From NCBI RefSeq assembly GCF_947568905.1, contig NC_079166.1:54002001-54066000 (forward strand): 64,000 nt of DNA. Direction: 5' to 3'. A program made the translations under genes and the position numbers. The notes beneath the pieces are model-generated. The model was not told the origin of the DNA and searched no databases. It saw only the letters and a list, made by a program, of their open reading frames with translations. Below, piece after piece: positions 2,969 to 64,000 of the stretch. The stretch comes from Ostrea edulis (Eukaryota). Position 1 is the stretch's first letter, and each line of letters opens with the position of its first letter.

Positions 2969-5900
2969 ATGCCTAGGTGTGGATGTGGCCACCGCTTTCC
3001 CTCTGTAGACTCAGACACAGAGGATGAGGACAGTGATGATGAATACGTGCCATCTTGGATGAAACTTTGGGAACAAAGAGAGAAAAAGTTCATTTCGACA
3101 AGAGCCTTCAAATTGGCAGAGAAAACATTACGAACTTTTAACAAAGTTATCATACAAGGAGAGACTGGATGTGGTAAATCCGCCATTGCTCTAAACATAG
3201 CATTAAAGTATAGGTCTCGGAAGTGGGAGGTTGTAATGGTGAAAAATATCAGAGACATTAAATCTGCTCCTGTGAAAAGAAAATCCGTTCTCTTCATTAT
3301 CAACGATCCGATAGGAAAAACTGCATTGGACGAAAAATCATGTAGACGGTGGTACTTACAGAAGAATTTGCTGAACCGTTATTTTTCGACAAATGGGCAG
3401 AATGAAAAAAAGATCAAAACTCCAAAAGTTATTGTGACTTGCAGGTCGACTCTTACTGAGAAGATTCTTGAATGCTATTTCAGTAAATTCACTGTCATTG
3501 ATATGGACGAAGAGGAGATTAAAATCTGTAAAGAAGAAAAAGAAAAAATTTTAAAGAAGCATATAGATTGTTCAAAACTTACTGAAAGTGATATCAATGA
3601 ATTACTTAAAACTGAAAAAGCATTCCCCTTAATATCTGATATGGCGAATACCTGCAAAATTCTTGAAAGGGATTTACAAGCATTTTACAGAGAACCCTTT
3701 GAAGAAATAAAAAAGGAAATTTTGTCTTTGAAAGACAGTTCAAAAGAAAAGTTTTTATGTCTGTTTCTACTTACCTTGAGTGGAAATCGATTAACGAAAA
3801 GCAGTTTTGAAGAGGAAATACATGATTGTGATGACACAAATAGCATGTACGAGGAGAATAGGATAGTCAATGATGACAGAGAAAATGAAAAGAAAAACAA
3901 TGAGAAAAATAAAGAGGCGTTTACTAACAACTATGATGGTGGTGACAACAAAGATGATGAAAATAAATATGTCAGCGTCAACAGCAATGATGAGGAANNN
4001 NNNNNNNNNNNNNNNNNNNNNNNNNNNNNNNNNNNNNNNNNNNNNNNNNNNNNNNNNNNNNNNNNNNNNNNNNNNNNNNNNNNNNNNNNNNNNNNNNNNN
4101 NNNNNNNNNNNNNNNNNNNNNNNNNNNNNNNNNNNNNNNNNNNNNNNNNNNNNNNNNNNNNNNNNNNNNNNNNNNNNNNNATGATAGAGGACGTATTGGA
4201 AATTTTAAACTTTCCAGAAAACTTTTCTAAAAGAATTCTCTTCGAAAACTTTAAGTATCTCAGGGGTCACTACTTCGTGATGAGAGTGGGTAAAATTTTT
4301 CAAATTACAAACGATTCGTTTTTGCTGGCGTTGACTCATATATTTTGTACACATTTTCCAGAACTATTCTTGAAATACTGTCCAAGTAAATTCTTTCGTA
4401 CTTTGACAACTTGCTCGATTGCAAAAGGGGGAATCTTTCCAAACGTTCAATTACAAGACGCATATATCAATTCATTTGTGGATAGAATTCTGGAAGATAT
4501 AAAGAATGGCACATTTTTGGATGTTTTTCTGAGTCCTTGGATCCGGGATGTGAGAGTCTTGTCCAATCTGCAAATGCGATTCGAAGCAATCCCGTACGAA
4601 GATCTGATACGGGTGACTTTAACATCAAAACTAGATGCTGACCTTACAATTGCAAGCTCGGAAGTACGAAAAAAAATGACTGGCTTGTCTCGACTGGATT
4701 TCATTGCACTAAGTAAGGAAGTATCTCCAATAATTCTGTCACTTATATTAAACCTGAACGATCTTTTCCACACCATGTTCACATTGATCAGAAAGAAGGC
4801 CGAGAATGAAGACAGATCTGAATGCTTCAAGAATGTTCCTTTAATGTGCGCCTGTTGTGTCAATGGACGAGAAGATCTTGCCAGACTAGTCATAGATAAT
4901 GTTGATGACAAACATACATGCTGGAGTAAACAAGAAAATATCTACCCTGTGCACATTGCTGCCAACTTCCTGAACACTGACGTCTTAGGTCTTCTTTTAG
5001 ATGGGGAGTGTGATGTTAACATAACAACACAAAACAAAGAATCGCCTTTTTTCTTGGCATCAGCAGTCGAAAAGTACCATCTCCAAAATATCCACTGGAC
5101 TAGTAGTCAGGCAGTGGGTCATTCCGCAAGAAAATACGAAGAGTTAGTGGAAGAAAACCGTTTAAAGACCCTTACTCTTCTTGAACAGAAAGGTGCAAAT
5201 GTAAACAATCATCCTAGTGAATTACCTTCTGCCCTTGCTTTTTCTTGTCAAAGGGGATATGTCGATACAGTTCAGTTTATGATTAGGAATGGTGCGAATG
5301 TGAAAGAAACTGACGAAGAAAACCTTAATGCGCTACATTTTGCTTCAGAAGTAGGGAATATTGAAATTGTTCAATTGTTGCTGGAGAGTGGTGCAGATAT
5401 AAATCTCAGTACCACAAGAGGCCCGATGCCATTATATTTAGCATCCCTTAATGGACACGTTGATGTAGTAGAGATGTTTCTTTCTAAAGATAGCACCCAA
5501 GAACTAAAAGGGAGATTGATATACAAGCCGTTCTCCGTAGCCTGCAAGCATGGCCATAAAAGGATCGTTGAAAGGCTTTTAGAATATGATAATCGTATAT
5601 TATCTGATGACACTTCATCTTTGTCGACTGCTGTTGGTAATGGGCACAAGGAAATTGTTGAATTGCTTTTGAAAAATGGCGCTGATGCAAATATTTCTAA
5701 AAATGCAAGCAAGATAAGCCCTTTATATTCTGCTGCTGGTTCCGGATATGATGATATTCTTAAATTATTACTGAACAGTGGTGTGAATGTTAACATGGAA
5801 ACAAAAAATGCAAATACGGCTTTGGATATTGCGTCACAGAATGGCCACCGTTTGAACGTTCAGATATTACTAGAAAATGGTGCAAATGTCAATCATTGCA

Positions 5901-7621
5901 CTATACAACAAGCAACTGCATTATTCTATGCGGCAGATAATGGTCACTATGAAATAGTGATGCTACTTCTACGGAAGAAAGCAGATGTGAATATCTGCAC
6001 GAAAAACGGAAACAGTCCCTTGATACGGGCTTCATCTTGTGGATATGAAAATATAGTTCGCGAACTTCTGAGTCATGGGGCTGATGTTAACCAATCCAAT
6101 GTTGCGGGGATAACAGCACTGTATTTGGCGTCTGAAAATGGACATACTGATATTGTAAAACTTCTGTTAGTCAACAAAGCAGATGTCAACTTAGGTAAAA
6201 AAGATGGAAGCACTTCAATGTATATTGCATCTCGATATGGGCATCATGGAATTGTTCAAGAACTGTTAAAACACGGTAAAAATATCAATGGCACGAGCTC
6301 GAAAAACCCTTTGTTAATAGCCTCCTATTTCGGACATTATGACATTGTTGAAATTCTTTTGGGAAACGGGGCGAATGTTAACGTGCAGGATGACGTTGGA
6401 GACACTCCTTTGATAACTGCGTCGAGAAAGGGATGGAGTGGAATCGTGAAAATTCTTCTGAAGTTCGGAGCCGATGTCACACTCTGCAACGAAGAAGATG
6501 ACGAAAATGCTTTACACTACGCATGTTTTCGAGGTCATACAGACGTGGTGAAAATACTACTTGATCATGGAATGGATATTGATGACTATGACGAATACAC
6601 GAACACGCCTTTACAGAAAGCTTTAGAAGGGGAACATCTGATGACTGCATTGTTTTTGTTAGATCATGGCGCAAATGTGAACATTGTAGCATGTGACACA
6701 TCTGCTCTTTATTTAGCATGCGACATCGGATTTAAGGAAGTAGTGGATATTCTTCTAGAGGCCAATGCAGAAGTTAATCCCAAGAACCCCGACGGTTCTT
6801 CTGCATATTCTCCTCTTTTTGCTGCTGTCGGGAATGGTTATTTTCAAATTACCAAAGAACTTTTACGCCATGGGGCTAATATCATCGATACGAAAAAATT
6901 TGGTGGGGAAACCTTGCTAGTAAAGGCCATTGAGTCTCGAAATTCTGGGATAGCAAAGCTTCTCATCGAACATGGAGCTAACGTCAACGAACAAGATGAA
7001 CGTGGAAACACAGCTCTGCATGCAAGCGCTTATTATACTGACACCCTAGATTGCATGACAGTTCTATTGAACAACAATGCCAATCCAAATGTTTCCAACT
7101 GTGACGGAATTACTCCAATGTTGATGGCACTGGAAACACGACCCGAGAAAAGGGATCGAATTCAGGCTCTCGTTGATCATGGAGCTAATATTAATGCTCG
7201 AGATAATTCTGGATATTTTGCACTGCAGTCGGCTTGTATATTCCCTGATCAAGATAATGTTGTTGCATATCTACTGAAAAATGGCGCCAATATCAATGCA
7301 CGTAATGGAAATGGAGAAACTGCTCTCTATGCAGCATCCAACACTGGCTATCTTCGGAATGTGAAAACACTCCTTCAGTATGGGGCAGACATTAATCTTT
7401 GTTCAAAAACTGGACTTAGTCCACTTGATATTGCGACGAAATTAGGAAACACAAAACTGAAAAAGTTTCTTCAGAAAAAAATACACGAGGGGAAAAATAA
7501 CAGTATTTCTGATTCACAGAGAGAGATTGTCGTGGCCAAGCAGAGTTCGGTAGCAACAGCTCTTCCAAGGAGAAGAAACTTTGCAAAGCTAACAAAGACA
7601 TTGCGCCAAAAGAGATTTTAG
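2969..7621 (+). CDS. Paralogue A, copy 1: nSTAND3-like P-loop NTPase plus ~26 ankyrin repeats (NLR/STAND-like), 1550 aa
   Basis: Uninterrupted ORF. F-x-x-T-R-A motif, then VIIQGETGCGKS (Walker A, 3158-3181), VLFIINDPIGK (Walker B-like, from 3287) and KVIVTCR, matching the nSTAND3 pattern by eye. About 26 ankyrin repeats counted (e.g. LHFASEVGNIEIVQLLLESGADIN). 183 N at 3998-4180 keep the frame. The 5' end is uncertain: AG acceptor-like sites at 2897 and 2956. Confidence 0.85.
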   Translation: MPRCGCGHRFPSVDSDTEDEDSDDEYVPSWMKLWEQREKKFISTRAFKLAEKTLRTFNKVIIQGETGCGKSAIALNIALKYRSRKWEVVMVKNIRDIKSAPVKRKSVLFIINDPIGKTALDEKSCRRWYLQKNLLNRYFSTNGQNEKKIKTPKVIVTCRSTLTEKILECYFSKFTVIDMDEEEIKICKEEKEKILKKHIDCSKLTESDINELLKTEKAFPLISDMANTCKILERDLQAFYREPFEEIKKEILSLKDSSKEKFLCLFLLTLSGNRLTKSSFEEEIHDCDDTNSMYEENRIVNDDRENEKKNNEKNKEAFTNNYDGGDNKDDENKYVSVNSNDEEXXXXXXXXXXXXXXXXXXXXXXXXXXXXXXXXXXXXXXXXXXXXXXXXXXXXXXXXXXXXXMIEDVLEILNFPENFSKRILFENFKYLRGHYFVMRVGKIFQITNDSFLLALTHIFCTHFPELFLKYCPSKFFRTLTTCSIAKGGIFPNVQLQDAYINSFVDRILEDIKNGTFLDVFLSPWIRDVRVLSNLQMRFEAIPYEDLIRVTLTSKLDADLTIASSEVRKKMTGLSRLDFIALSKEVSPIILSLILNLNDLFHTMFTLIRKKAENEDRSECFKNVPLMCACCVNGREDLARLVIDNVDDKHTCWSKQENIYPVHIAANFLNTDVLGLLLDGECDVNITTQNKESPFFLASAVEKYHLQNIHWTSSQAVGHSARKYEELVEENRLKTLTLLEQKGANVNNHPSELPSALAFSCQRGYVDTVQFMIRNGANVKETDEENLNALHFASEVGNIEIVQLLLESGADINLSTTRGPMPLYLASLNGHVDVVEMFLSKDSTQELKGRLIYKPFSVACKHGHKRIVERLLEYDNRILSDDTSSLSTAVGNGHKEIVELLLKNGADANISKNASKISPLYSAAGSGYDDILKLLLNSGVNVNMETKNANTALDIASQNGHRLNVQILLENGANVNHCTIQQATALFYAADNGHYEIVMLLLRKKADVNICTKNGNSPLIRASSCGYENIVRELLSHGADVNQSNVAGITALYLASENGHTDIVKLLLVNKADVNLGKKDGSTSMYIASRYGHHGIVQELLKHGKNINGTSSKNPLLIASYFGHYDIVEILLGNGANVNVQDDVGDTPLITASRKGWSGIVKILLKFGADVTLCNEEDDENALHYACFRGHTDVVKILLDHGMDIDDYDEYTNTPLQKALEGEHLMTALFLLDHGANVNIVACDTSALYLACDIGFKEVVDILLEANAEVNPKNPDGSSAYSPLFAAVGNGYFQITKELLRHGANIIDTKKFGGETLLVKAIESRNSGIAKLLIEHGANVNEQDERGNTALHASAYYTDTLDCMTVLLNNNANPNVSNCDGITPMLMALETRPEKRDRIQALVDHGANINARDNSGYFALQSACIFPDQDNVVAYLLKNGANINARNGNGETALYAASNTGYLRNVKTLLQYGADINLCSKTGLSPLDIATKLGNTKLKKFLQKKIHEGKNNSISDSQREIVVAKQSSVATALPRRRNFAKLTKTLRQKRF
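3998..4180. other. Run of 183 N inside an acidic/Asn-rich insert of paralogue A
   Basis: Same flanks (gatgaggaa|N|atgatagagg) in all three copies. Lengths are 183, 171 and 180, all multiples of 3. Confidence 0.95.
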
Positions 7622-7926
7622 TGATATTCTCTCCTTTTGAATACTGTGTGACAGATTTTAGTGATATTCTCTCCTCTAGAATACTGTGCGACAGATTTTA
7701 GTGTTATTCTCTCCTTTTGAATACCGTGCGACAGATTTTAGTGATATTCTCTCCTTTTGAATACTGAGCGACAGATTTTAGTGATATTCTCTCTTTTTGT
7801 ATAATGTGCGACAGATTTTAGTGATATTCTCTCCTTTTGAATACTGAGCGACAGATTTTAGTGATATTCTCTCTTTTTGAATACTATGCGACATATTTTA
7901 GTGATGTTATCTCCTTTTGAATACTG
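7611..7926. repeat. 40-bp minisatellite, 8 copies, starting across the stop codon of paralogue A
   Basis: Monomer acagattttagtgatattctctccttttgaatactgtgcg. The first unit supplies AGA TTT TAG. Also at 36391-36706. Confidence 0.93.
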
Positions 7927-11021: not shown

Positions 11022-11355
11022 AAACACACCAAAAACATGCAATGGGATTTAATAAAAACTTGGTTTGTTTACAGGTACCACTCTGGATAAATCGAATGCA
11101 GGCCAAGAATGATATACGTTAATAATAGAGAGATTAAATTCAACACAAGTAAGTTTCCATTTTGTTATCTAAATGTTAAATTTTATACAGAACCGAGTTA
11201 TGCACCAGATGTATATTCTTAGTATTTGACATTCATTTACGTTGTGGTATTTAGAAAAAGTATTTCAAAATTTTCTTTCCAAGATCCACAAAGGTAAGAA
11301 TATATCAAATTAATATGGAAGTCAAATAGGAGTTTAAAGTTGTGCGAATTAATAT
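11022..11355 (+). repeat. 334-bp direct repeat, left copy (identical to 17188-17521)
   Basis: Base-by-base identical to 17188-17521 (offset 6166). Abuts the truncation point of the Penelope RT. Also at 39798-40131. Confidence 0.92.
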
Positions 11356-11660
11356 ACAAAAGTCGCACCTACCTATGCAACATTAACCCTATGTTATCTA
11401 GAACATAAGTTACATGATCAACTATGTACGTTGTGGGGGGCAGAATTTGCAAATAATATACAGTCTAAATGGAAGAGATATTTAGATGATTGTTTTATCT
11501 TGTGGGATGATGATGTCGATAAGTTATCGGAGTTTTACGATCTACTAAACCAAATGAACTCGAATATCAAATTCACGATGGAAACAGATGATACGCAAAT
11601 GCCATTTCTTGACGTTCTTATATTAAAAGAAAATACCAGCTTAAATACGGATATTTATTA
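11356..11660 (+). mobile_element. Penelope-like element, 5'-truncated RT fragment (left half)
   Basis: Translates TKVAPTYATLTLCYLE...KWKRYLDDCFILWD...QMPFLDVLI...NTDIY, i.e. PLE RT motifs including YLDD. Also at 40132-40436. Confidence 0.88.
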
Positions 11661-12156
11661 ATTAAAGAATCCGCCTGATAGATAAAACCAAAAAACTGGC
11701 TGTAATAACAGTCCATGACTCATTGCAGTGAATAACAGACACAAGCAACGTTTACCAATTTATTCATATAACAGCAATGACACATTCGGGATATACTGAA
11801 ATGGACAATATCGGCCGCATGTGAAAATTTTGTGGGGTAACTGGGGAGTCGCCCAGTGAGCCAGTTTAACTTAACTTGTAAGGGGTACACTGGGTGGCCC
11901 GAGTAAAACATTCAGTGCCCAGACCTGAACGGACGCCAGCGTTCTAAGGAGGTAAGCGAGACCCGCCCTTCTCACCCTGTCTCCTGCAGTGCTACCTGTT
12001 ATGTACATTATCATGTTGGACATAAGCCCCAAACATGCATCAGACTGTAGCATCCCCTCACTGAAGTGAGGTGGATGTGGGCCCAACCGTCCCCGGTGGT
12101 GGCCCCACTATTAGTTTACTTGTTCTAACTTGTACGACTTTTAGTACTGTAAATTG

Positions 12157-12980
12157 CAATCTGATTAAAACCAGATCCTGAGATCCGCTCACTTAGATCG
12201 CTACACTAGGATCTGACGTAACCCCATATAGGGTCACGTCCGCATGACCTTTCGTTAAACCAATGAAATTCACCCTGTCGATTTATACCAACGATAATTT
12301 TTCTCCCATGAACCTTTGCGTCATTTACGTTAGAGATGCAAAAAAAAAAAAAATGACAGACGACTGCACACCTGTCAAAACATGCGATTTAAACAACGTC
12401 TGTATTCTCTGCGGGTTTTCTTTCATTCAAACGCTAAAAAATCCCAATGGAGTTCACAATTCAAGGAAAATGGCTTCGATTGTTTGGTTTGAAAGAAAAC
12501 ATATCACAGCTAGATGCGACGTCACAATGCACCGTTTACGTCGACTGGCGTTATATTCCTCGCGTTATTTAAGTAGACCATCTTGAAAACTATTCAATTC
12601 GTACCCGTCCCTATTCATACATAAATCTGAATTCACAATTAATTTAATTTGGGTATATTTCATATCGTACGTTTTGTTGTTTGAATGAACGGAATAGATT
12701 AGGCATTATTGCGAAAGTTTAAAATTCGTTATGCGAGAATATACAACTTTACAGTGTGGAATAAACTTCGTGGGAGACAGATTGCAGCAATTTGTTTACG
12801 AATTGCCAGGAACCGCCTAAATAGCCATCATTGTCTGTATGGCGCAATCTGACTGGCTGATAGTTCTCATGAATATTCCAAGCGAAAGGTCATGCGGACA
12901 TGACCCCCTATGGGGTTACGTCAGATCCTAGTGTAGCGATCTAAGTGAGCGGATCTCAGGATCTGGTTTTAATCAGATTG
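12157..12980. mobile_element. 824-bp non-autonomous TIR element (AcademH- or Mutator-like) with 9-bp TSD
   Basis: 98-bp TIRs starting CAATCTGATTAAAACCAGATCC (3 mismatches). Perfect TSD TGTAAATTG at 12148-12156 and 12981-12989. Also at 40933-41756. Confidence 0.88.
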
Positions 12981-13909
12981 TGTAAATTGCCCCCTGCTTT
13001 AGAAGCAGGTGGGGGAAACAACCAGGTTTTGGAGCATAAACAGTCATCACATACCATTACCGACTCCCCAGTTCGGCCACAGACATTGGAACAATGTCCC
13101 CCACAAAAACTTGTAGGATTAAAAGCTGAGTGAAACTCAAAATACAATAAAGAATTACATGGATAAGAATAAGTCATTTGATCAAACCACAGTACTTGAA
13201 ACTGGAGTTGCACAAAAATTACAGTAAACGCACAATCGGCAAACAGCAACAAGCACGAAATGATAAATTACTTGTGCGGCGGGTAAGAAAAACCTTGACA
13301 TTTGAAGAAAAAGAAAAAAGAAATTCCAAGGCCGCTTGATATTGTTGAGAAATAATTGATTTCCCAAGACCGACATACAGACGAGTGCCATCTGTTCGGA
13401 ACAACTCAATCTCAGTAGCCTTGATGACATGGTTGTGTCCAATGTACAAACCTCTAACCTGGTTAGCCATGAATTTTTATCATGCAGCTATGGGCAACAT
13501 GCCAATATCTTCTAGGTACTGAAAACGTGTCGTGGGAGTGCCATCCGCATGAAAAGAGCAATATATAAGTAATGGGAGGGGGGCTATAAATATGCCTTAA
13601 TTAGTAGTGTTGGGCAGATAATTTGACAACCTAGGGGTTTGCCGGTTTGGATGGTCTTGGACCTATGTGAAAATACCAACGCTTGACCTCGCTGGTTTTG
13701 AGAATCTTGTGGATTCGACGATGACAAAACTCACTGACTGCGCAAACCGTAAAAATGCCAATGAAAAGGCTGCTGAAAAAATAAGACATGATTAAAAAAA
13801 AAAAGGCGAGCGACATACTGATGTTAAAACACGAAAGATTTTAACAAATAATTGGTAAGATATAGGAAGTCTTGATATATTGAGACACCTATAACCCGCT
13901 TGACACCTT

Positions 13910-14575
13910 CTAGGGATGAGAGAAATTTGATTGGTTGTTTATGTACATCAACCAGAATTCGCTGTGAATTTTGCCCCAAGACATAGCAGGATTGGAGGCC
14001 TTACGGAGTCGGAATTGGTCGTCATACTTTTGCCAATTTTGTGAACGATTAGCTGCAAGCCTTATATCTCGCATGTACTTAAGCATTTCTTGGGCCGTTT
14101 GACTATGTTGAAGTACAATGCTCATGTAAATCATGAAGGTTGATGTCCACTTTTCTATGTTCAAAAAGGAGTTAAGTTGGCGCTTGACTACGTATAGCTT
14201 GCCATTGACAAGTTGTAAATCCCCGTGGGACTCAAATTGCTCCAATTCCGTAGCAGATTTGAGTAGGACAGACAGATCAATAAATCCCCCCTCCCATATT
14301 TTTTGCTTGAGTTTAAGCGGGACATGACTGCCGATATCATCGTATGTAGATGTAAATTGACAAGGTAAAGCCAAGGGTAAATATGACGCTTGGTTCAACA
14401 AAAAATTGCAAGACTCACCCGGGTTATCCGGTGTATTATCGATTGGGAATCGAGGGACCTCCTCAGGGGGTTGTGCCTGCCCTTCTGCAGGGGCTAGTCG
14501 ATCCGTCCAAGGTGTGGTCGTGTGATTTGGACTTCGTTCCCGGAGTTGAGCTGTTGTCCGACGATTACGTTTCAT
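13910..14575 (-). CDS. gag-like ORF of the DIRS/Ngaro-type element (C-terminally truncated at the deletion junction)
   Basis: 221-aa ORF with the KIWxGxFIDLxxLL and YDxQFRL...W..I..E.WL pattern recalled for YR-retroelement ORF1. Also at 42686-43351. Confidence 0.65.
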   Translation of the reverse strand: MKRNRRTTAQLRERSPNHTTTPWTDRLAPAEGQAQPPEEVPRFPIDNTPDNPGESCNFLLNQASYLPLALPCQFTSTYDDIGSHVPLKLKQKIWEGGFIDLSVLLKSATELEQFESHGDLQLVNGKLYVVKRQLNSFLNIEKWTSTFMIYMSIVLQHSQTAQEMLKYMRDIRLAANRSQNWQKYDDQFRLRKASNPAMSWGKIHSEFWLMYINNQSNFSHP

Positions 14576-14915
14576 CCCGACCCCCCTGGCCGGGGATTTC
14601 TGGGTCGCTGCTCGTTTTTAGGTGGCATTCCTAATGCAGGAAAAAATTGTCAAAAAGCTATGTGTAGGGAATAAATCCAAAAAAGGGGAGAAAAAACTTC
14701 GGCCACGTGCTTGGTTTCCGCCTCAAATACAAGAATCACGTTGCTGCTTCGGTTGGAAAAAGTGTAATGAATGGGTTCGATCACAGGGAGTACCGAGTGT
14801 GACGTAGTGCATACAAATTAACTTGTACCATCTAGCCGCTAAAGTCACGTAGACCCGACCTACAGGGTGTATCAAAATTAATATGGACTATTTGATATAA
14901 ACTCAAATAATCTCG

Positions 14916-15986
14916 ATTATAAGCCCACAGATACCCACCAATACCTGTATTTCGGATCGTGCCATCCCCACCATACTAAAACAGCTTAACCATATAATCT
15001 CGCAAGAAGGATTTGTACCATTGTCAGCAATATCGATACGAGGGATATCCGCTTGGAGGAATTAAAATTGTATTTATTAAGCCAAAAATACCCAGAACAA
15101 CTTGTAGACGATGGAATAATGAAGGCTAAGGAGTGCGATAGGATACAGCTACTTTCAAACACACGATGTGCTAATGACGGAGAAATAATACCATTTGTAC
15201 ACACTTATAATCCGAGAAATCAAAACATCAATTCAATTGTTTATGAATTAAACAAGCTACTTGGGGAAGATGAACAAACAAAAGGCATATACAAGAACTG
15301 TCGTTTTATTAGCAGTAAACGCCAGCCCAAAAGTCTTAAGAGAATACTTTGTTCCTCCCAATTAGATGACCGTACTTATACAATGTCAAAGAGTACTCAC
15401 CCTCGATGCGGTACATGTGACTACATTACAAAAGGGACCAGTTATAATTTTAACGGACGAGAATTTAAAGTTAATGCTAACATGTCATGCGATACAAAGG
15501 ATGTCATATACGCCATCACATGTCCTGGATGCAAGGAATATTACATTGGTGAAACTGGCAACACTCTCCGTGCCCGTGTACGTGCACATAAGCAGCACAT
15601 CAGTACACCTGAATACAGACAAATCCAGTTAAGTGCACACCTGGAAACGTGTGGTAAAAAACGATTTAACATTTTCCCATTTTATAAACTCAGATGTGCC
15701 AGTGCTATTCAGAGATGGGAAAAAGAATAACATTTCATTGGTATTCTAAAGCCAAAACTTTTAATAGTCTTTTATAATTGCCTATGATTTTCCCGTACTT
15801 TTTCCAGATCATTGTTTTACATTATCCATGACGTCACAATATAGACATTTAACGTTCCGCTTACTTTGACGTCATAATCACTGTTACTATGATACTGCTA
15901 TGTATACATTTTTGTAAAGCTTCTGAAGATGTAATGAAAGCGCTAAAGCTTTACGGAGGATTTCTGTATTTTCTTTTCATATTTTT

Positions 15987-16026
<40 letters not shown>

Positions 16027-16148
16027 GAATAATTCGTCCTCCAAAAAGTGTGAAAAATACAAAAACATTTACCAACCATATTAATTTGATTTATTTCATT
16101 TTCATCATTATATTTATGGTGGCTCAATACACTTTGAACGAGTTTCTG
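14916..16148 (+). mobile_element. Penelope-like element, right half: RT C-terminus, GIY-YIG endonuclease and 3' terminal region
   Basis: YKPTDTHQYL..SCHPHHTK..PYNLARRICTIVS, then ORF 15053-15730 with CGTC...VIYAITCPGCKEYYIGETGNTLRARV (GIY-YIG). An in-frame stop marks decay. The 3' end coordinate is approximate. Also at 43692-44914. Confidence 0.9.
15914..15954 (+). ncRNA. Minimal type I hammerhead ribozyme in the Penelope terminal region
   Basis: GTAAAGCTT (helix I) CTGAAGA TGTAAT GAAA GCGC TA AAGCTTTAC (helix I'). Has a 9-bp helix I, conserved core, and 1-bp helix III with palindromic GCGC loop. Helix II is unpaired (U.U). Confidence 0.72.
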
Positions 16149-16276
16149 ATATCAATATTGAAAGATATGTTGGTATGTAATATGTAAATATGTCAAAAAG
16201 GCAAGAATATACAATTTCGGATTAATATGTGTAAATCATGATTTTCAAAAATGTATTCCAATAAAAATGAACAATA

Positions 16277-16343
16277 GGCTCTGGTGGATTTGAACACGAG
16301 ATCTGCGGGCCAGTATCCCTATACTTTATCCACTGGGCTGAGA
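16277..16343 (-). other. tRNA-derived sequence (SINE/MITE head or tRNA pseudogene)
   Basis: The reverse strand has an A-box-like AGCCCAGTGG and a B-box GTTCAAATCC at tRNA-like spacing. No intact cloverleaf is recognisable. Also at 45043-45109. Confidence 0.5.
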
Positions 16344-17187
16344 TGATTGACAAACAAATCGATCAATACATATAATTGCACGCAAAAACATTTGAATTAA
16401 CATCTTGTGACGTCGTGTCATAAACAGTTTAAGGCTTGGTGTTATGAACCACCTTAGCAATAAACAAAACAATTGAAATTGTTTAAATTTCCTTTCGTTG
16501 TACATTGAAAATCTTATTGTTGATAAAAGAGTCAGTCAGTCAAGTGCAGTTTTTAAATTTCAAGTATTATATATTTCAACTAAAGGTGCGATACATTCCC
16601 CTCAAAATGTTGGCTGTATCCAAAGCATAAATAAACATGAGCTGGTATTGAATTGTATGCAGTTTAATGTTGGATGAATGCCGTTGATCGATCAGATAGT
16701 CAAAAATTATATGCTTACTACAAGTCTACACCCAGACACATGTACATGTAGCTTTGTTATCATTCAACATATCTATTGACAATGACAGTCAAAAGTATAA
16801 TTTTATTTATTTTTAAAAGAATAAAGGCTGTAACAAACACGTTCACTTCCTAAGATTTGTGCCCTCTGTAACTGTAGAGGTAAATATGTTGAACTGTTGG
16901 GATTTATTGTGACTGTAAATAGGAACTGAATAGAAATTCTTTTATTTATGAAAACAATAGAGAACATAATTTTGGAAATTGTATGCAAATACTTTACAGA
17001 AATTCTTTGATAATCTGTAGCTTTCCTTTGAAAGATACGAATATCCATGCATATAACATTCGCTTTCAAGGTAACTGTAATAAAATTTTACGATCATTGT
17101 ATCTTGTTAAAATAATATTCAATGTATACAAGTATCGTTAAAGTGCAAAACTGAATGGGGCTTAATGACGGGCAATGATCGTATCCA

Positions 17188-17521
17188 AAACACACCAAAA
17201 ACATGCAATGGGATTTAATAAAAACTTGGTTTGTTTACAGGTACCACTCTGGATAAATCGAATGCAGGCCAAGAATGATATACGTTAATAATAGAGAGAT
17301 TAAATTCAACACAAGTAAGTTTCCATTTTGTTATCTAAATGTTAAATTTTATACAGAACCGAGTTATGCACCAGATGTATATTCTTAGTATTTGACATTC
17401 ATTTACGTTGTGGTATTTAGAAAAAGTATTTCAAAATTTTCTTTCCAAGATCCACAAAGGTAAGAATATATCAAATTAATATGGAAGTCAAATAGGAGTT
17501 TAAAGTTGTGCGAATTAATAT
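17188..17521 (+). repeat. 334-bp direct repeat, right copy
   Basis: Identical to 11022-11355. Contains ttacag|74 nt|gtaagt and ttccaag|10 nt|gtaaga splice-like signals. Also at 45954-46287. Confidence 0.92.
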
Positions 17522-19473: not shown

Positions 19474-22400
19474 ATGCCCAGGTGTGGATGTGGACATCGC
19501 TTACCTTCCGCAGACTCGGGGGCAGAGGATGAGAACAGTGACGACGAAAATATGCCATCTTGGATAAAATTTTGGGAACAAGAAGATAGAAAATTCGTTT
19601 CAACGAGGGCCTCCAAACTTGTAGAGGATAAATTACGAAATTGTAACAGGGTTATCATACTGGGAGAGACTGGATGTGGTAAATCTGCCATTGCTCTAAA
19701 CATAGCATTAAAGTATAGGTCTCGGAAGTGGAAAGTTGTGATGGTGAAGAATATCAGAGACTGCTCCTGTGAAAGAAAACTCTGTTTTTTTCATTATCAA
19801 CGATCCGATAGGAAAAACTGTATTGGACGAAAAATCTTGTAGACAGTGGTACTTGCAGAAGAATTTGCTGAACCGTTATTTTTCGACAAAAAGGCAGAAT
19901 GAAAAAAAGGTCAAAACTCCAAAAGTTATTGTGACTTGTAGGTCGAGTCTTGCTGATGAAGACGTCAGTTACTATTTCAAGCAATTTTCTCTGATCAATA
20001 TGGATGAAAGGGGCTTTGAATTGGCTAAAGAGGAAAAAGAAAAGATATTAAAGAAGCATACAGATTGTTCACAATGTACCGATGCCGATGTCGATGAACT
20101 ACTGAAAACTGAGAAATCATTTCCTTTAATATCTGAACTGCTTTCTGCCAGTAAAACATTTGAAGGAAATATACTTGCGTTTTACAGAGAACCTTTTGTA
20201 GAAATCAAAAAAGAAATTCTATCTTTAAAAGACATTTCTAAAGAACAGTGTATGTGTTTGTTTATACTAAACGTGTGCGGAAATCGATTAACAAAGGAAA
20301 ACTTTGAAGAGAAAGAAGATGACTACAAGCATATTGAGAGTATTCACGATGACAGAGAGAATGGGGTAGTCAATAATGACCGAAAAAGTGAAAAGGGAAA
20401 CAATGAGAAAGACATTGAGAAGTCCAACGACTGCAACGGGGAAAGAATAGACAATTATAAAAATGACAACAAAAATGATAACGAGGATGGCAAGAACAAT
20501 AATGATAACTATGAACTCGATAAACAGATGATAAATGACTTATTGAAAGCTTTCAAGCTTCCTGAAAGCACATCCAAAAGAACTCTCTTCGAAAGTTTAA
20601 ATCAGTTTAGAGGTCATTACTTCGTGAAACGAATTAAAGATATTTTTCAAATCACAAATGGTTCTTTTCTGCGAGCATTGACTCATATATTTTGTACAAG
20701 CTTTCCAGCGCAATTCTTAAAATACTGCCCAAGTAATTTTTTTCGTACTTTGACAACATCAACTGCACAGTCGGATATCATTCCAAAAGTCCAATTACAA
20801 GATAATTATATCAATTTATTTGTGGATATAATTCAGGAAGATATAAAGACTGGCACATTTTTGGATGTTTTTCTGAGTCCTTGGATCCGGGATAAAAGCG
20901 TCTTGACCAATCTGCTTTTGCGATTCGAATCAATGCCATATGAAAAGATGATTGAGTTGACTCTCAACTCCAAATTAAATGCTCATCTGAAGATTGCAAA
21001 GCCCAAGGTACGAAAACAAATGACTGGCTTTTCTCGACTGGATTTGATTGGACTAAGTAAGGAAGTATCTCCAATAATTCTGTCACTTGTATTAAACCTG
21101 GATGACCTTTATCACGCCATGTTCACTTTGATAAGAAATAATGCAAATGGATCTAAATACTTGAATAATGCCCCTCTAATGAGTGCATGTTGTGTCAACG
21201 GACGAGAAGATCTTGCTAGGCTAGTTTTAGATATTGCAAATGACAGAAAAAGATGCTGGAGTAAACGAGAAAATATCTACCCCATGCACATTGCTGCCAA
21301 CTTCCTCAACACTGACATTTTAGACCTTGCTTTAGTTGGAGAGCATGATGTGAACATGACTACACGAACCATGGAATCACCTTTTTTCTTGGCAGCAGCA
21401 GCCGGAAAATACGCCCTCCAAAATATCCCCTGGACTCTCAAGCAAGAATTGAGCAACTCCTCTAAAACTTACGATGAATTGGTCGAGGAGAACCGTTTAA
21501 AGATCCTTACTCTTCTTTGGCAGAGAGGTGCAGATGTAAATATTCATCCAGATAAATCATCGTCTGCCCTTGCATATGCCTGTCAAAAAGGAGATATAGA
21601 TACAATCCAGTTTATGATTAAGAGTGGTGCGAGTGTGAAAGAAACTAATGATGAAAACTTTGGCGCACTACATTTTGCTTCAGAAGTAGGAAATATTGAA
21701 ATTGTTCAGCTGTTGTTGTGCAGTGGTGCAGATATCAATATCTGTACCTCAAAGGGTTTGACGCCGTTATATCTAGCATCATTCAATGGACATGCTGATG
21801 TAGTGGATATGTTTCTTTCTAAAGGAACCACCCAAGTATTGAAGGATAAATCAGAATGTAATCCATTCTTCGTAGCCTGCAAGCATGGTCATGAAAGGAT
21901 TGTCGAAATGTTTTTAGAATATGATCCGTTCGTGCATTGCAAATTGCCTGATAACACTTCAGCTTTATTGGCGGCTGTTGATAATGGACACAAGGAAATT
22001 GTTGAATTGCTTCTAAAAAAAATGGCGCTGATGCAAATATTGTTCAAAACAATAGTAAAATAAGCCCTTTATATTCTGCTTCCGGTTCTGGATATGATGG
22101 TATTTTGGAATTATTACTAAAACCCAGTGAGAGTGTCGACATGGAAACGATGAATGCGAATATTCCATTGGATATTGCATCACAAAATGGTCACCATTCT
22201 ATCGTTCAGACATTACTTGAAAATGGAGCAAATGTCAATCACTACACTTTAGAAAGGAAATCTCCATTGTTCCATGCAACTGAGAATGGTCATTATGATA
22301 TAGTGATGTTTCTATTGCAAAAGAAAGCAGAACTGAATTCCTGCACAAACAAAGGAAGAAATCCATTGATGCAAGCTTCATCTTGTGGATATGAAAATAT

Positions 22401-23994
22401 AGTTCGCGAACTTCTGAGTCATGGAGCTAATGTAAATGAAGCTGATGTCGAGGGAAGTACAGCACTTTATTTGGCCTCCGAAAATGGCCACATTGATATT
22501 GCAAAAGTGTTGTTGGCAAACAAAGCAGATGCTAGTCTGTGCAATGACGTTGGACTTACCCCACTGTATATTGCATCTCGATTTGGACATCATATAATTG
22601 TTCAAGAACTTTTGCAAAAGGATACCAAAATTTGTGGTACGTCCTCGAAAAACCCCCTACTAGCAGCGTCGTATTTTGGACATTACAAAACTGTTGACAT
22701 TCTTTTGCAAAACAGGGCAAATGTTAACGTACAAAATGACGACGGAGATACTCCTTTGATAACCGCGTCCAGAAAGGGATGGTGTGAAATCGTGAAAATT
22801 CTTCTGAAGTTTGAAGCTGATGTCAATCTTTATAATGAAGATGATGAAAATGCTTTACACTGCGCTTGTTTTATGGGTCATACAGACATTGTTAAGATAT
22901 TACTCGATCATGGTATGGATATCGATGGTCATGACGAATACACACCATTGCAGCAAGCTTTATTTGGGGAGCGTATGACTACTGCTTTGTTTCTGTTAGA
23001 TCATGTCGCAAATGCGAACATTGTCACCTATGGTACAAGTGCTCTTTATTTGGCATGTGATGCCGGATTCAAGGAACTGATGAATATTCTTTTGGAACTA
23101 AATGCAGACGTCAATCCAAAGAACCCTGATAATTCCCCTGCAGATTCTCCTCTTTTGGCTGCCATCAGAAATGGATCTTTTTACATTACAAAAGAACTTT
23201 TACGTCATGGGGCCAATATCATAAAAACGAACAGACATGGCGGCCAAAGTTTGTTAGCGATGGCTGTTGAGAACCAAAATCTTGGGATAGTGAAGTTACT
23301 CATTGAATATGGCGCTAATGTCAACGAACAAGATGAATATGGAACCACAGCTCTGCATGCAAGCGTTTATTATACAGACACTCTAGATTTCATGACAATA
23401 TTATTGAACAACAATGCCAATACGAATGTCAGGAACTATATTGGAACAACTCCATTAATGATGGCACTGCACAAAAATCCTGAGACGAAGGAACGAGTGC
23501 AGGCTCTCCTTACTCACGGAGCTGACATTAATGCCCGTGATAACTTTGGGTGTTTACCACTACACTCTGCTTGTAAATGGCCCGATGAACATGATGTTAT
23601 TCCATATCTACTAAATAATGGCGCTGACATAAATGCTCAGGATGAAAATGGAGAAACTGCACTTTATGTGACATCCTTTTATGGCTTTCTTGAGAATGTG
23701 AAAACACTTGTTCGATACGGAGCAGACATTAACCTTCACACGAGCGTTGGTCTCAGTCCACTTGATATTTCCATGCAAAACGGATATACAGATATCGAAA
23801 AATTTCTCAAACAAAATATGAACGAAGAGAAGAATAAAAGGGAAAAGAAAATATCTTCCAAATTGGAAAACAACAGTGTTTCTGTTTCACAAAGAGAGGT
23901 TGTTTTGGTTAGACAGAATGCTTTAGCGCCAGTTCTTGGAAGGAGAAACAACTCTATGAAACTTCAGAAGACATGGCAGCAAAGAAATTTTTAG
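19474..23994 (+). pseudogene. Paralogue B, copy 1: nSTAND3-like NTPase plus ankyrin repeats, two frameshifts
   Basis: Collinear with paralogue A from MPRCGCGHR to the C-terminal ...QRNF. An 8-bp deletion at ~19760 (agaga^ctgctcc vs agagacattaaatctgctcc) and a +2 A in an A8 run at 22015-22022 split it into ORFs 19462-19842, 19769-22063 and 22105-23994. Confidence 0.85.
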
Positions 23995-28302: not shown

Positions 28303-29996
28303 TCCTTCACAGCCAGTAGGTGCTCTCAGGTAGAAGGGGACAGTTTCGCACTAAAACTATAGGCCCGATCAACTTCCTTATACGAAGGAAATGCACCATA
28401 TTTAAAGTAATATTACAAATGTGTAAAAATGTATAGAATAATCTTAGGATACATGTCAAATGTAGCTGAGTGCTTAATGAAAATGTTGATATGCAACATG
28501 TAGGTGTCACCATGATTCCTATATATATATATATGGGTGTAAATACGAAACCTAGACCGTGTCTAAATCCCCTCGCTCAGTACCGTGATGGTATGTGGGT
28601 GGTGCGGATTAGCTCAAATGAGAGAAAATCAAAGCGAGAAAGAGGTACCTGCTCAGAACATGTTTAGTGCACCAGCGCCAGTATGTATAAATTACATGTA
28701 ATTTAGGATCATGATTTATTAACTATACCAATATGAATTACAACTATTGACATAAAAGGGAACTATGATTTTTCATTATTCTGTCATAATCTGACTTTCA
28801 TGTATACCTCCTACCCACCATTCTCTATCCAGAGTTCCGTGTGCTACTCGCATTATACGGTGTGAGTGAAACTCGTACAACACGCCCTCTGGTGAGAGAA
28901 TGCCTACCCACATGTTTCAGAACCAAAACACTGACCCCTGGCACCTCACACAGTATCAGTAATATAGATACATCGTTCATCATGCACTGTGCACTAGACA
29001 GTGGTATCAGGGCTCATTGTGGAGTGTTTTGAGGGTTGGGAAAAAGATCAGTGTATTTATTATCTGCATCCTACATACGTCGCTATCTTGCATACACGTG
29101 GGTCAGGGTGGGAGTAAAGATTTTTCACACGTGACAACCTTTGCATCTTCATCTATATTTGCAACTCGGACCTCGTCAGCTGCGGGGACTTATAGAAATC
29201 GCGAAATGGCATTGTACACTGATATATATACAATAACGTAAATAATCATAGTAACTATAGTATTATATATTATTACTACAGTAACTTGATCCGAAGAGTC
29301 GGATCACGTCGAGTTGACAGGCGCGGATCATCAGATCACACGAGACGCTAGTAGTAATGATAAATTTATTATATACCCCCTTGTGCATTTTAAATCCACA
29401 TTTATAAGATAATTAATGTAATCCAAATTATAAAAAACACAGACATACCATGAAATTATGTTTTGTATACGCAGGTTCGTTTGTGACGAGTTCAACATTT
29501 TCCACAAATAACGTTGCGTTGTTGCATTGTGACGTCATTGTGACGGCATCAGTTTCAGAGGATACTGATACGGAATCGGAAAACCGGATCACACGCTGTG
29601 AAATCCACAGTATCAGAGAACAATACATTGATGGGTATATAATAAATTGAATGATCGGGATGTACTGTAAGTGGGTGTGCCGACCTGTCTGAACTACGTG
29701 TCTGTATCAAACATACAAAGCTAAGGTTCACATGGACTTGGGGAGGAAATGGCATAGGCAACACATTGACGAGGAGAGATATTGAAACGAAATAAAGCTG
29801 AAAACCTCATGAAAACATGAAAAGACACAATTTTGAAAATGATGTCTACATTACTAATATCCGAGACGTAATGACGTCTACATTACTAGTATCCAAGACG
29901 TAATGACGTCTACATTACTAGTATCCGAGACGTAATAACGTCTACAATACTAGTCAATCGTAACTACTCGGCTATTTCCGTAACCGCAAATGAACT

Positions 29997-30573
29997 TAGT
30001 CTCGTGCAACCAGACGCTCTGCTTTTTCCGTAAATATCCGAAGAGCAGAGAGTCTGGTAAAGATACGCGATAACGTTTGTAACGTCAGATCGAGGCTTAC
30101 CAAAATTTCGGTATTTAATTTGATTGGTTGATTCAACACACCTTCAAAATAACGACTACCGAAGAAATTTGTAATATATTGAATTTGCCGTTTAAGCTTA
30201 AGGATTTACAACTAGAGTGGTTATAAAAACTTTTGCAAAAGGAAAGGATTTATGCTGTTCTACCGACGGGAAATGGTAAAACCGTTTTATCAAAATTACT
30301 TTAGGAGGCAAAAGTGAAAGTACAATTTCCAGCTGACAAAGAGCGTAATTTCTTTTTATTGGACTTATAGTTATGATTTTCCCATTTGTATCACTAATGA
30401 AGGATCAACTAAATAGCGTCAAATTTCGGAATTGACTGTTTATGTCAGAGAGAATCCAACGGAAACTAAATTAGCGCTCCCTAGCGGTAACAGTTATTAT
30501 CGCGTGTCTTTACCAGACTCTCTGCTCATCGGAGATTTACGGAGACAGCCGAGTGTCTGGTTGAACGAGACTA
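29997..30573 (+). mobile_element. AcademH-like relic, copy 2
   Basis: Same TIRs, TSD and RecQ motifs as 1207-1783. Confidence 0.8.
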
Positions 30574-31760
30574 CAAATGAACCTCGTATGTGGATCGACG
30601 CCATCAGAGTTGGTTGCTACGTATACGTAAACGTAACTTTGACGCCACAGTCGTACGTTACACTATGAAACGTGAACTTTCAAAAGCATCTAAGATATTA
30701 TACACATCTAAGGTATTGTACCACTATCAATTTCCACTTACATGTTATGTATTAGAGTGAATAAGACGTTAATGATACCAAAACTGAATCTCTGGTGAAA
30801 ATATAAATAACATACTAGTCAGGGATTCGGTTCTGGCCTTTTAACACTCATCCACAGGCGCGCTTCCGGCGAAGAAATGCATCAATTTGATGCAATTCTT
30901 GCGCCGATCTACGTCCGCGTCTTCTTGCCGGTTACGGAAAATGACGAGCGCGTGATCCGATTGCATTACTAGTATCCGAGACGTAATGGTGTCTGCATTA
31001 CTAGTATCCGAGACGTAATGGTGTCTGCATTACTAGTATCCGAGACGTAATGGCGTCTGCATTACTAGTATCCGAGACGTAATGACGTCTGCATTACTAG
31101 TATCCGAGACGTAATGGTGTCTACATTATTAGTATCCGAGACGTAATGGCGTCTACATTACTAGTATCCGAGACGTAGAAATTTACAGGGATGTTTAAGA
31201 TTTTGAAGATATATGAAAATAATAGTTGTTTGCTTGTCAAGAATAAAGAATTTTAAAGAAGTTAACTTCTACTCCAATGCCCCCCCCCCCTCCACTTTGA
31301 AAAAAGGATGCTAGGTGTCTACATGTATTATTATTTTATTTTGGTTTAAATTTCAAAATAGTTGTGATCCTCCCCAACTCCCCAAGGTGGAGCTACATCT
31401 TTGAAAGCATCGCGTATATATCAAAATCTAAGCCGGGGTATTTTTTTTATTTTTGATGGTATCCCACCTAGGCTATGATATCTCATTTGTGCAATGTACC
31501 CAACCTGTTCAATAGCTAAAATATTACATATAATGCAAGTAAAGTATCTACCGTGTTTACAGGAAATAATAATTGTGATGGAAAACATGCACTGGTGCGA
31601 TAAAAGTTTATCAACTAGAACTGATGGTGGTTAAGTGGGAGGGAAAACGCTTTCACACTGATAACCTTTTATTTAATTATTATTTTCAGGTGAAACTTCA
31701 AGAATCACTTTGTGGCTAGGATTGACCAGGGAATAAATATACTTCCAGGTAAATTTAGAG

Positions 31761-39063: not shown

Positions 39064-40131
39064 GGATTTATAAAATTTTGAAGGGGAGGTTGTGATCCAA
39101 GTTTGTACTTTTTCTGCCCCAAAAGACCCTAAAATGACAAATAATATGACTAGATTTGTTGAACAAATTCATCCTATAGGGAGGGGGAGTTGCAACCCCC
39201 GTAATCCGCTCCTGGAAAGAGGGAGTACAGCACATGCAGTGTTATCCAAGATTTAAAGATAATTATATCGTTATTTATTTATTCCTTTGATTTATACCCA
39301 TGTACATGCATTTTTGTCAAAAGATATGTTTTTGAAAAGTCATGAAGCATTATACAATAATTGCTGTTTTTGAGGTCAATACGATGATTTAGACACCTGA
39401 GGAGTACAATATTCACCGAGCCCGAAGGGCTGAATTATTGTTTTATTATATGATTAAATGATTAAAAAACCCTTCAAGATTGTTCTTTGCTTTAATCATA
39501 AGTTTCAACGACCTATTTTTGGTCCTATGTGGAAAAAATAATTCCTTATGTTCACCTGGAAGGTCTATTTTTGGTCCTATGTGGAAATAATAATTCCTTC
39601 TGTTCACCTGGAAGGTCACGTGCAGGTAAATATAACGTAGTATGATTTCTACATTGTTGGATCTCAGCCAATTAGAGAGCGCAAGATCGCGACTACTTTT
39701 TCCGTCTTGGTTTTAAATTTTACTTTCCCCTTTCAAAGTCTCGCGAGACCCAAAGTATACGAGAATTTGGGCATGTTCGTAAATAATACCAGTTCTGAAA
39801 CACACCAAAAACATGCAATGGGATTTAATAAAAACTTGGTTTGTTTACAGGTACCACTCTGGATAAATCGAATGCAGGCCAAGAATGATATACGTTAATA
39901 ATAGAGAGATTAAATTCAACACAAGTAAGTTTCCATTTTGTTATCTAAATGTTAAATTTTATACAGAACCGAGTTATGCACCAGATGTATATTCTTAGTA
40001 TTTGACATTCATTTACGTTGTGGTATTTAGAAAAAGTATTTCAAAATTTTCTTTCCAAGATCCACAAAGGTAAGAATATATCAAATTAATATGGAAGTCA
40101 AATAGGAGTTTAAAGTTGTGCGAATTAATAT

Positions 40132-63500: not shown

Positions 63501-64000
63501 CTGCATTATTCTATGCGGCAGATAATGGTCACTATGAAATAGTGATGCTACTTCTACGGAAGAAAGCAGATGTGAATATCTGCACGAAAAACGGAAACAG
63601 TCCCTTGATACGGGCTTCATCTTGTGGATATGAAAATATAGTTCGCGAACTTCTGAGTCATGGGGCTGATGTTAACCAATCCAATGTTGCGGGGATAACA
63701 GCACTGTATTTGGCGTCTGAAAATGGACATACTGATATTGTAAAACTTCTGTTAGTCAACAAAGCAGATGTCAACTTAGGTAAAAAAGATGGAAGCACTT
63801 CAATGTATATTGCATCTCGATATGGGCATCATGGAATTGTTCAAGAACTGTTAAAACACGGTAAAAATATCAATGGCACGAGCTCGAAAAACCCTTTGTT
63901 AATAGCCTCCTATTTCGGACATTATGACATTGTTGAAATTCTTTTGGGAAACGGGGCGAATGTTAACGTGCAGGATGACGTTGGAGACACTCCTTTGATA
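60547..64000 (+). pseudogene. Paralogue A, copy 3: frameshifted by a 10-bp tandem duplication; runs off the window
   Basis: gtcgaaaagt is duplicated at 62641-62660, giving a stop at 62688 (713 aa). The downstream ankyrin sequence continues out of frame to 64000. 180-N run at 61576-61755. Confidence 0.85.

Follow-up and report, generated by a model that had tools for sequence, protein, structure and literature searches.

An nSTAND3-ankyrin gene in a tandem array of Ostrea edulis: a probable STAND NTPase without an effector domain of its own

Does a single long open reading frame (ORF) of Ostrea edulis encode a STAND-type protein that carries no effector domain of its own, and how might such a protein signal? 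The question is raised by a stretch of 64,000 nucleotides (assembly GCF_947568905.1, contig NC_079166.1, positions 54,002,001 to 54,066,000 of the forward strand; hereafter the window), in which the ORF listing gives a plus-strand frame at 2969–7621, called as 1550 codons, which is here termed gene A and is repeated at 31761–36401. An earlier annotation made from the letters of the sequence (the original prediction) had seen in this frame an nSTAND3-type nucleoside triphosphatase (NTPase) followed by ankyrin repeats. With moderate confidence, gene A is read here as a probably intact gene for a cytosolic, effector-less nSTAND3 STAND NTPase of a small oyster clade, which would act as a nucleotide switch and deliver its output via other proteins.

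Gene A can be read in two pieces, piece 1 (2969–3997, 343 codons) and piece 2 (4181–7618, 1146 codons), on either side of a run of unread letters. In piece 1, Pfam places an nSTAND3 domain (PF20720) at residues 41–199 with an E value of 1.3e-23 and a score of 83.8 bits (cut-off 27.2), covering positions 1–153 of the 155 in the profile, which bears out both the nSTAND3-type NTPase and the roughly 40 residues ahead of it that had been proposed. Piece 2 matches ankyrin families alone (Ank_2, E = 7e-142), and the Pfam families in gene A are limited to nSTAND3 and those of ankyrin type. As predicted, no TIR, Death, HEPN or nuclease family was matched at E ≤ 0.01 in the two pieces, and LRR, CARD and PYD likewise gave no match in gene A at this threshold. 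A hidden Markov model (HMM) search for NACHT, also proposed in the original prediction, returned 19.2 bits, under the cut-off of 26.7. The leader (2969–3088; this and all features of the gene given below lie on the plus strand) comprises the start codon and 40 residues, beginning with MPRCGCGH and continuing into an acidic Ser/Thr cluster, and its residues 1–22 are predicted to be disordered, with a predicted local distance difference test score (pLDDT) <50. The possibility that the leader contains a linear motif, of LIR type or another, was rejected, the W-x-x-L spacing not being kept across the clade. The nSTAND3 P-loop NTPase domain, the nucleotide-binding domain (NBD; residues 41–199, 3089–3565), shows five parallel strands in the model and contains Walker A (GETGCGKS, 3158–3181), Walker B (3290–3307, ending in D113) and the sensor-1 Arg159 (3443–3445); among 72 relatives, G69 and K70 never vary, and D113 and R159 are each found in 70. 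It is followed by the helical domain HD1 (residues 188–270, 3530–3778), whose helices are modelled at pLDDT >90 and whose FPL motif (3623–3631; F219 kept in 69 and P220 in 71 of the 72 relatives) is taken to correspond to the GxP/GLPL motif of other STAND proteins. A low-complexity linker rich in Asn, Asp, Glu and Lys (residues 285–343, 3821–3997), recognised by its composition and low pLDDT, then leads into the unread run; its pLDDT lies at 55–69 in blocks over residues 281–320 and is <50 at 286–289 and 321–397.

To the right of the unread run stands the winged-helix domain (WHD; piece 2 residues 1–75, 4181–4405), modelled as a beta-hairpin and helices at model residues 406–479 and matching in fold the WHD of MalT, NLRC4, NRC1 and Apaf-1, in which the alignment of the 72 relatives places the family 'F.HD' motif at 4310–4315, here ITND (Asn44-Asp45 of piece 2). 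Next come about four degenerate ankyrin-like helix pairs (piece 2 residues 93–209, 4457–4807), present in both models and without a Pfam match, and then the ankyrin solenoid of 26 helix-pair repeats (4841–7495), of which the third carries a long insertion. The predicted number of about 26 repeats agrees with the 26 regular helix pairs at residues 221–1105 of the AlphaFold2 model of piece 2 (pLDDT 86) and with 25 matches of an HMM built from the gene's own repeats, and the total of ankyrin-type repeats, regular and degenerate, is about 30. The gene closes with a disordered, basic C-terminal tail of 40 residues (piece 2 residues 1107–1146, pLDDT ~27) and the stop codon (7499–7621), and comparison with relatives marks ALPRRR (7559–7576) in this tail as a clade-specific motif. 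Structure prediction, as the original prediction had suggested, yielded a complete NBD-HD1-WHD module together with the solenoid: model 1, which covers 2969–5200 and for which the unread codons were entered as X and an alignment of 72 sequences was supplied, reached a pLDDT of 81 and a predicted template modelling score (pTM) of 0.80. The best PDB matches of the gene A model in Foldseek are all STAND proteins (SAMD9, Dark, Avs3, NOD2, EfAvs5 and NLRPs), and alignment of the STAND module gave Z scores of 14.2 for MalT (275 residues), 14.0 for NLRC4 (308 residues), 13.8 for NLRP3, 13.5 for the NB-ARC of NRC1 and 13.3 for Apaf-1, while alignments to DARPin and ankyrin-1 begin at model residue ~505 (VIA-align). 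The search of PDB sequences with piece 1 returned no match, and a profile of the NBD-HD1 family found the AAA domain of midasin (E = 2e-10) and generic P-loops only; since no solved STAND is matched by sequence in the PDB, the assignment rests on Pfam and on the fold. Walker A and B, the sensor-1 Arg, an HD1 motif of GxP type, the WHD and the C-terminal repeats are present and the WHD His is not, so that membership of the STAND superfamily stands on the remaining features and the loss of the His is a change at the level of the clade.

The unread run consists of 183 N (3998–4180), nominally 61 codons, and the frame is open over all 1550 codons only if the run is counted as such. The claim of an uninterrupted ORF thus holds for the frame on both sides, and 61 of the 1550 codons remain unread. 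In the three tandem copies of gene A in the window the runs are 183, 171 and 180 N long (3998–4180, 32790–32960 and 61576–61755), all multiples of three with identical boundaries and all inside the acidic low-complexity coding linker, and they look like a masked stretch of codon repeats rather than a scaffold gap. Piece 1 has exactly 343 codons, and the frame is equal to the left and right of the run. In four relatives the two pieces are colinear within one protein, with 6–27 residues between them in an acidic, D/E-rich low-complexity linker; at the position of the run this D/E-rich linker varies in length among relatives. A second gene of the window, paralogue B, has a single open frame over the equivalent interval, and in model 1 the HD1 to the left of the gap and the WHD to its right pack into one STAND module. 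On account of the frame, the colinear relatives, the frame of paralogue B and the joint fold, continuity of gene A across the run is very likely, as judged from sequence and model.

An exhaustive search of representative proteins with piece 1 found 625 at E ≤ 1e-3, 166 at ≤ 1e-10 and five at ≤ 1e-30. The named relatives are all from oysters of the genera Saccostrea, Crassostrea and Magallana; their annotations read 'uncharacterized', 'ankyrin-like' or, in UniProt, 'Novel STAND NTPase 3 domain-containing protein', and the same architecture bears the NCBI names 'ankyrin-3-like' and 'ankyrin-1-like'. Closest is the 'ankyrin-3-like' protein of Saccostrea echinata (P0001, 1460 aa), with 50% identity over the NTPase part; a Saccostrea 'ankyrin-1-like' protein (P0004, XP_061169144.1) forms a tandem pair with it, 7.5 kb apart, and P0002 and P0005 are Logan proteins without names. 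The phylogeny foreseen in the original prediction was built on NBD-HD1-WHD columns and grouped gene A with P0001 and P0002 (99% support in the SH-aLRT) and, as their sister, P0004 with P0005 (99%). Common to the five members of the clade are a short leader, an array of ankyrin repeats and related tail motifs, reading PALPR[KR]R in gene A, P0001, P0004 and P0005 and PALPRRS in P0002; the motif is missing from P0006, P0007, P0011 and P0020. The clade is also marked in the WHD His column, where 58 of the 72 relatives have His and all five members have Asn or Asp (Asp in P0001; Asn in gene A, P0002, P0004 and P0005). At the Saccostrea locus (JAVQLB010000003.1, 10001–14587, with 1–2466 also examined) the orthologue is an uninterrupted genomic ORF of 1528 codons, as against 1460 aa in the NCBI model, and it is suspected that the model removes 68 codons of the acidic linker as an intron; a paralogue without a leader is found in the same orientation 7.5 kb upstream. 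Elsewhere in the family three N-terminal states are mixed on the tree, namely a short leader, a signal peptide with a Cys-rich ectodomain and membrane helix, and a DZIP3-type HEPN; the HEPN_DZIP3 of relatives was matched in Pfam at E = 1e-18 to 1e-36, one relative has a SAM domain, and for some proteins of the wider family the short leader probably reflects a truncated gene model. Expanded sets of oyster proteins in which DZIP3-HEPN is fused to NTPases and ankyrins have been catalogued (PMC3710099, Table 1), as have bivalve expansions joining STAND NTPases, HEPN and ankyrins, receptor-like forms included (PMC8195603), and the nearest ESM Atlas clusters in a feature search were nSTAND3 proteins of molluscs and bacteria. 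To have called the gene a candidate for an undescribed system was therefore an overstatement, since the same architecture stands in public protein sets, and these two surveys describe oyster expansions that combine STAND NTPases, HEPN and ankyrins; gene A is a further member of a catalogued, functionally unstudied oyster nSTAND3-ankyrin family and not a new kind of system.

Whether the protein truly begins at the short leader decides whether it lacks an effector. The best candidate for a splice acceptor is the AG at 2896–2897, with 15 pyrimidines in the 20 positions ahead of it and 71 nt upstream of the ATG, and an in-frame TAA (2942–2944) lies between it and the ATG, nine codons before the start, as the original prediction had noted; this AG probably ends an intron of the 5' untranslated region (UTR). 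The Saccostrea echinata locus has a matching layout, where the acceptor precedes the ATG by 67 nt and is followed by in-frame stops, and at four loci of the clade in-frame stops precede the ATG by 2–9 codons, or 2–8 if gene A is set aside, among them the contigs of P0002 and P0005, where the stop lies two and five codons upstream, respectively. The MPRCGCGH start is common to gene A, P0001 and paralogue B (it is MPRCACGT in P0003), the acidic Ser/Thr cluster of the leader also occurs in P0002, P0004 and P0005, and nucleotide similarity between gene A and paralogue B begins exactly at the ATG. These data bear on the idea, raised in the original prediction, that an upstream coding exon joined through the AG at 2955–2956 or a similar site supplies an effector (HEPN, a death-fold, or an ectodomain with a membrane helix) and makes the product a conventional tripartite protein. 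Its attraction is that N-terminal modules have been swapped freely on close NTPase cores in the wider family, and are thus probably encoded by separate exons, and that the AG at 2955–2956 is in frame with the ATG. This AG has a weak pyrimidine tract, however, and neither paralogue B nor Saccostrea conserves the 12 nt that separate it from the ATG, the stronger acceptor leads to an in-frame stop in both species, the MPRCGCGH start is kept in the Saccostrea model as well as in paralogue B, and short leaders are found in all five clade members. Moreover, a tblastn search of the 64-kb window with 41 N-terminal modules taken from relatives, among them HEPN, SAM and ectodomains with a membrane helix, found none of them, the best E value being 0.057. 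We regard an effector supplied by such an exon as very improbable. The shared start, the upstream in-frame stops and the absence of the relatives' modules from the window together make it unlikely, and support the conclusion that gene A has no effector domain of its own; of the two possibilities offered at the outset, the sensor-only form is thus favoured by these lines of evidence together with Pfam, and the one requiring an exon at 2955–2956 lost ground.

The whole window (1–64000) consists of about 2.2 copies of a 28,790-bp unit, arranged head to tail and 99.8–99.9% identical, with unit boundaries at 28790/28791 and 57575/57576. The second copy of gene A (31761–36401) has an intact frame in the ORF list and differs from the first by two substitutions outside the N run, whereas the third (60547–64000), which runs past the end of the window, is frameshifted by a 10-bp tandem duplication (GTCGAAAAGT twice, at 62641–62650) and reaches a stop at 62688. 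Because the copies differ by a few single-nucleotide polymorphisms, by the length of the N run and by this 10-bp indel, the array units are argued to be distinct copies or haplotypes and not an exact assembler loop. Paralogue B (19474–23994, plus strand, repeated at 48240–52760), with 78–80% nucleotide identity to gene A, bears two frameshifts, at ~19761 and ~22018–22027, in both array copies. Between gene A and paralogue B, dN/dS is 0.33 over the whole length and 0.29 for the ankyrin region (dS 0.59), with regional values of 0.26–0.52 and none above 1 in this test for diversifying selection. Most of the divergence, as read from these sequences, would therefore have built up under constraint, and paralogue B either died recently or carries assembly indels; given a dN/dS of 0.33 against gene A, it is probably a recent pseudogene.

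Gene A itself could likewise be recently dead or dying, with a stop or frameshift hidden in the N run, or its copies could be duplicates that are not transcribed, lying in a segmental array with many transposable elements. We consider this unlikely. It would accord with the frame-shifting duplication in copy 3, with the two frameshifts in both copies of paralogue B, with the high-copy repeats directly upstream of gene A, and with the seven sequencing runs in which gene A occurs, none of which is recorded as RNA; those designated X2–X5 are genomic, with intergenic sequence covered evenly and repeats hugely deep. On the other side, copies 1 and 2 are open for 343 + 1146 codons around the N run, the lengths of the run are multiples of three in all copies, the dN/dS of 0.33 points to constraint, and the catalytic motifs are all intact. 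A probably intact gene A is thus retained.

Besides the two genes, the unit contains repeats and a Penelope-like remnant. Two direct repeats of 334 bp and 100% identity (11022–11355 and 17188–17521) delimit the region 11022–17521, which recurs at 39798–46287, and an ORF between them (15053–15727) has a GIY-YIG domain (Pfam E = 1.3e-5); the region is probably the remnant of a Penelope-like retroelement. Just upstream of gene A, 400–2400 (equivalent to 29190–31180) is a very high-copy repeat whose contig word depth reaches 3.8e5, compared with ~10–200, by run, for unique sequence, and which is bracketed by 32-bp satellite arrays (1048–1164 and 2172–2387). From the stop codon of gene A, a 40-bp tandem repeat of 7.8 copies spans 7613–7926, in the 3' UTR or just downstream.

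A further possibility is that the protein is a housekeeping scaffold and not an immune sensor, an NTPase-gated ankyrin platform for membrane or cytoskeletal clients that is perhaps tethered by palmitoylation at Cys4 and Cys6. Such a role would suit the conservation of the end motifs in clade members of at least two oyster genera, the purifying selection along the whole length, the Z score of 13.7 between the solenoid and the membrane-binding domain of ankyrin-1, the N-terminal CxC motif kept in four sequences, and the fact that close relatives are true membrane proteins. The palmitoylation is, however, conjecture, and the other family members look like parts of conflict systems: they have expanded by lineage, are fused in some cases to HEPN RNases and have homologues in bacterial defence (PMC3710099, PMC8195603). 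Tandem duplication of recent date with pseudogenisation also speaks against a scaffold, as does the slightly greater variability of the concave ankyrin positions relative to the other surface. The concave positions are the least conserved class in five of five comparisons, a weak trend that against P0001 amounts to a conservation of 0.33 for the concave face, 0.38 for the other surface and 0.65 for the framework. On balance the scaffold is given a low but appreciable probability, and a part of gene A in innate immunity or cell death is likely when judged by its family context.

As an effector-less STAND NTPase, the gene A protein would be a nucleotide-driven switch, in which the ankyrin solenoid might bind a protein ligand or hold the NTPase closed, and exchange of the nucleotide would allow NBD-HD1-WHD modules to oligomerise. 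Because it has no effector of its own, its output would have to pass via other proteins, and the conserved peptides at its two ends, or clustered solenoids, could recruit these; alternatively, it might co-assemble with nSTAND3 paralogues equipped with a membrane anchor or with an HEPN RNase of DZIP3 type, in the manner of sensor and helper NLR pairs. Several observations weigh against this account. Oligomerisation, ligand binding and any immune role are themselves predicted properties of the protein. The WHD His with which most STANDs hold ADP is absent from the clade, whose regulation may therefore depart from that of the NLR model. A stop or frameshift could lie within the N run, none of the sequencing runs in which gene A occurs is of RNA, and the locus is partly decaying, with one of three gene A copies and both copies of paralogue B frameshifted. 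The purifying selection on the ankyrin array shows no arms race, and no linked partner or helper gene was found in the 28.8-kb unit, nor near the Saccostrea orthologue (within 10 kb). Taken together, the loss of the His and the acidic insert suggest a regulation unlike that of classical NLRs.

An extension of this account would make the five-member clade the 'sensor-only' arm of an oyster STAND network, whose members would sense a ligand through the solenoid and then co-oligomerise with HEPN or membrane-anchored nSTAND3 executors. This seems doubtful to us; if true, it would be an animal counterpart to the sensor/helper NLR networks of plants, and both the acidic insert separating HD1 from the WHD and the replacement of the His that clamps ADP would be adaptations to helper dependence. 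NLR-like genes have expanded greatly in oysters, animals prone to mass mortalities caused by OsHV-1 and Vibrio, and these expansions have received little study. Gene A is a tidy case, within one exon, of the form at its simplest (a switch and repeats with no effector); its clade-specific features (the terminal motifs, the missing WHD His and the acidic insert) are open to mutation, and it may serve as an entry point to how effector-less STAND proteins signal in invertebrates.

Among known systems, the canonical ankyrins ANK1–3 have ZU5, UPA and death domains after a membrane-binding domain of 24 repeats, and since gene A is without these domains, the NCBI name 'ankyrin-3-like' given to its closest relative is misleading. 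Sensor-only NLRs that need helpers include NAIP with NLRC4 and the plant sensor NLRs with NRC helpers; gene A may resemble these in being a receptor without an executioner of its own whose output would run via a related STAND, although no linked helper gene was found in the intervals surveyed. With animal and plant NLRs, Apaf-1 and MalT it shares the order NBD-HD1-WHD followed by repeats (Z 13.3–14.2 over 271–308 residues), and it differs from them in its sub-threshold NACHT score, in the lack of CARD, PYD, TIR, CC, LRR and WD40, in the replaced WHD His, and in a disordered acidic insert of at least 100 residues between HD1 and WHD. Bacterial Avs5 (AVAST type 5) has the architecture SIR2-nSTAND3-TPR/Sel1/PPR repeats (PMC12931631; PDB 9jap) and is similar to gene A in having an nSTAND3-type NTPase before a helical repeat sensor (EfAvs5, Foldseek E = 3e-4), but has an N-terminal SIR2 effector and repeats of TPR class, whereas gene A is eukaryotic and effector-less. 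Among PADLOC models, piece 1 matched the candidate PDC-S73 (E = 9e-16), mad8, IetA and TRIP13 and none of those for Avs; the occurrence of nSTAND3 in prokaryotic defence proteins, as stated in the original prediction, is confirmed by Avs5 and by the PDC-S73 match. The 'NLR/Avs-like' label was too strong: the STAND fold does align with NLRs and with EfAvs5, but membership of Avs was rejected for want of a PADLOC Avs model match and of an N-terminal effector, and classification as a NACHT NLR was rejected on the NACHT score. Other oyster nSTAND3 proteins, from Crassostrea and Magallana, are of one NTPase family with gene A (E = 1e-29 to 1e-11, 25–35% identity, many with ankyrin arrays) and have the Walker A and B, TCR, FPL and WHD motifs in common with gene A, while differing from it in an N-terminal HEPN RNase or an ectodomain with a membrane helix, in keeping the WHD His, and in lacking the terminal motifs of the gene A clade. 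Nearest of all are the Saccostrea proteins P0001 and P0004 and the Logan proteins P0002 and P0005, which differ from gene A in an identity of only 30–50% and in the length of the linker, and which match it in architecture, acidic linker, PALPR tail motif and single large coding exon.

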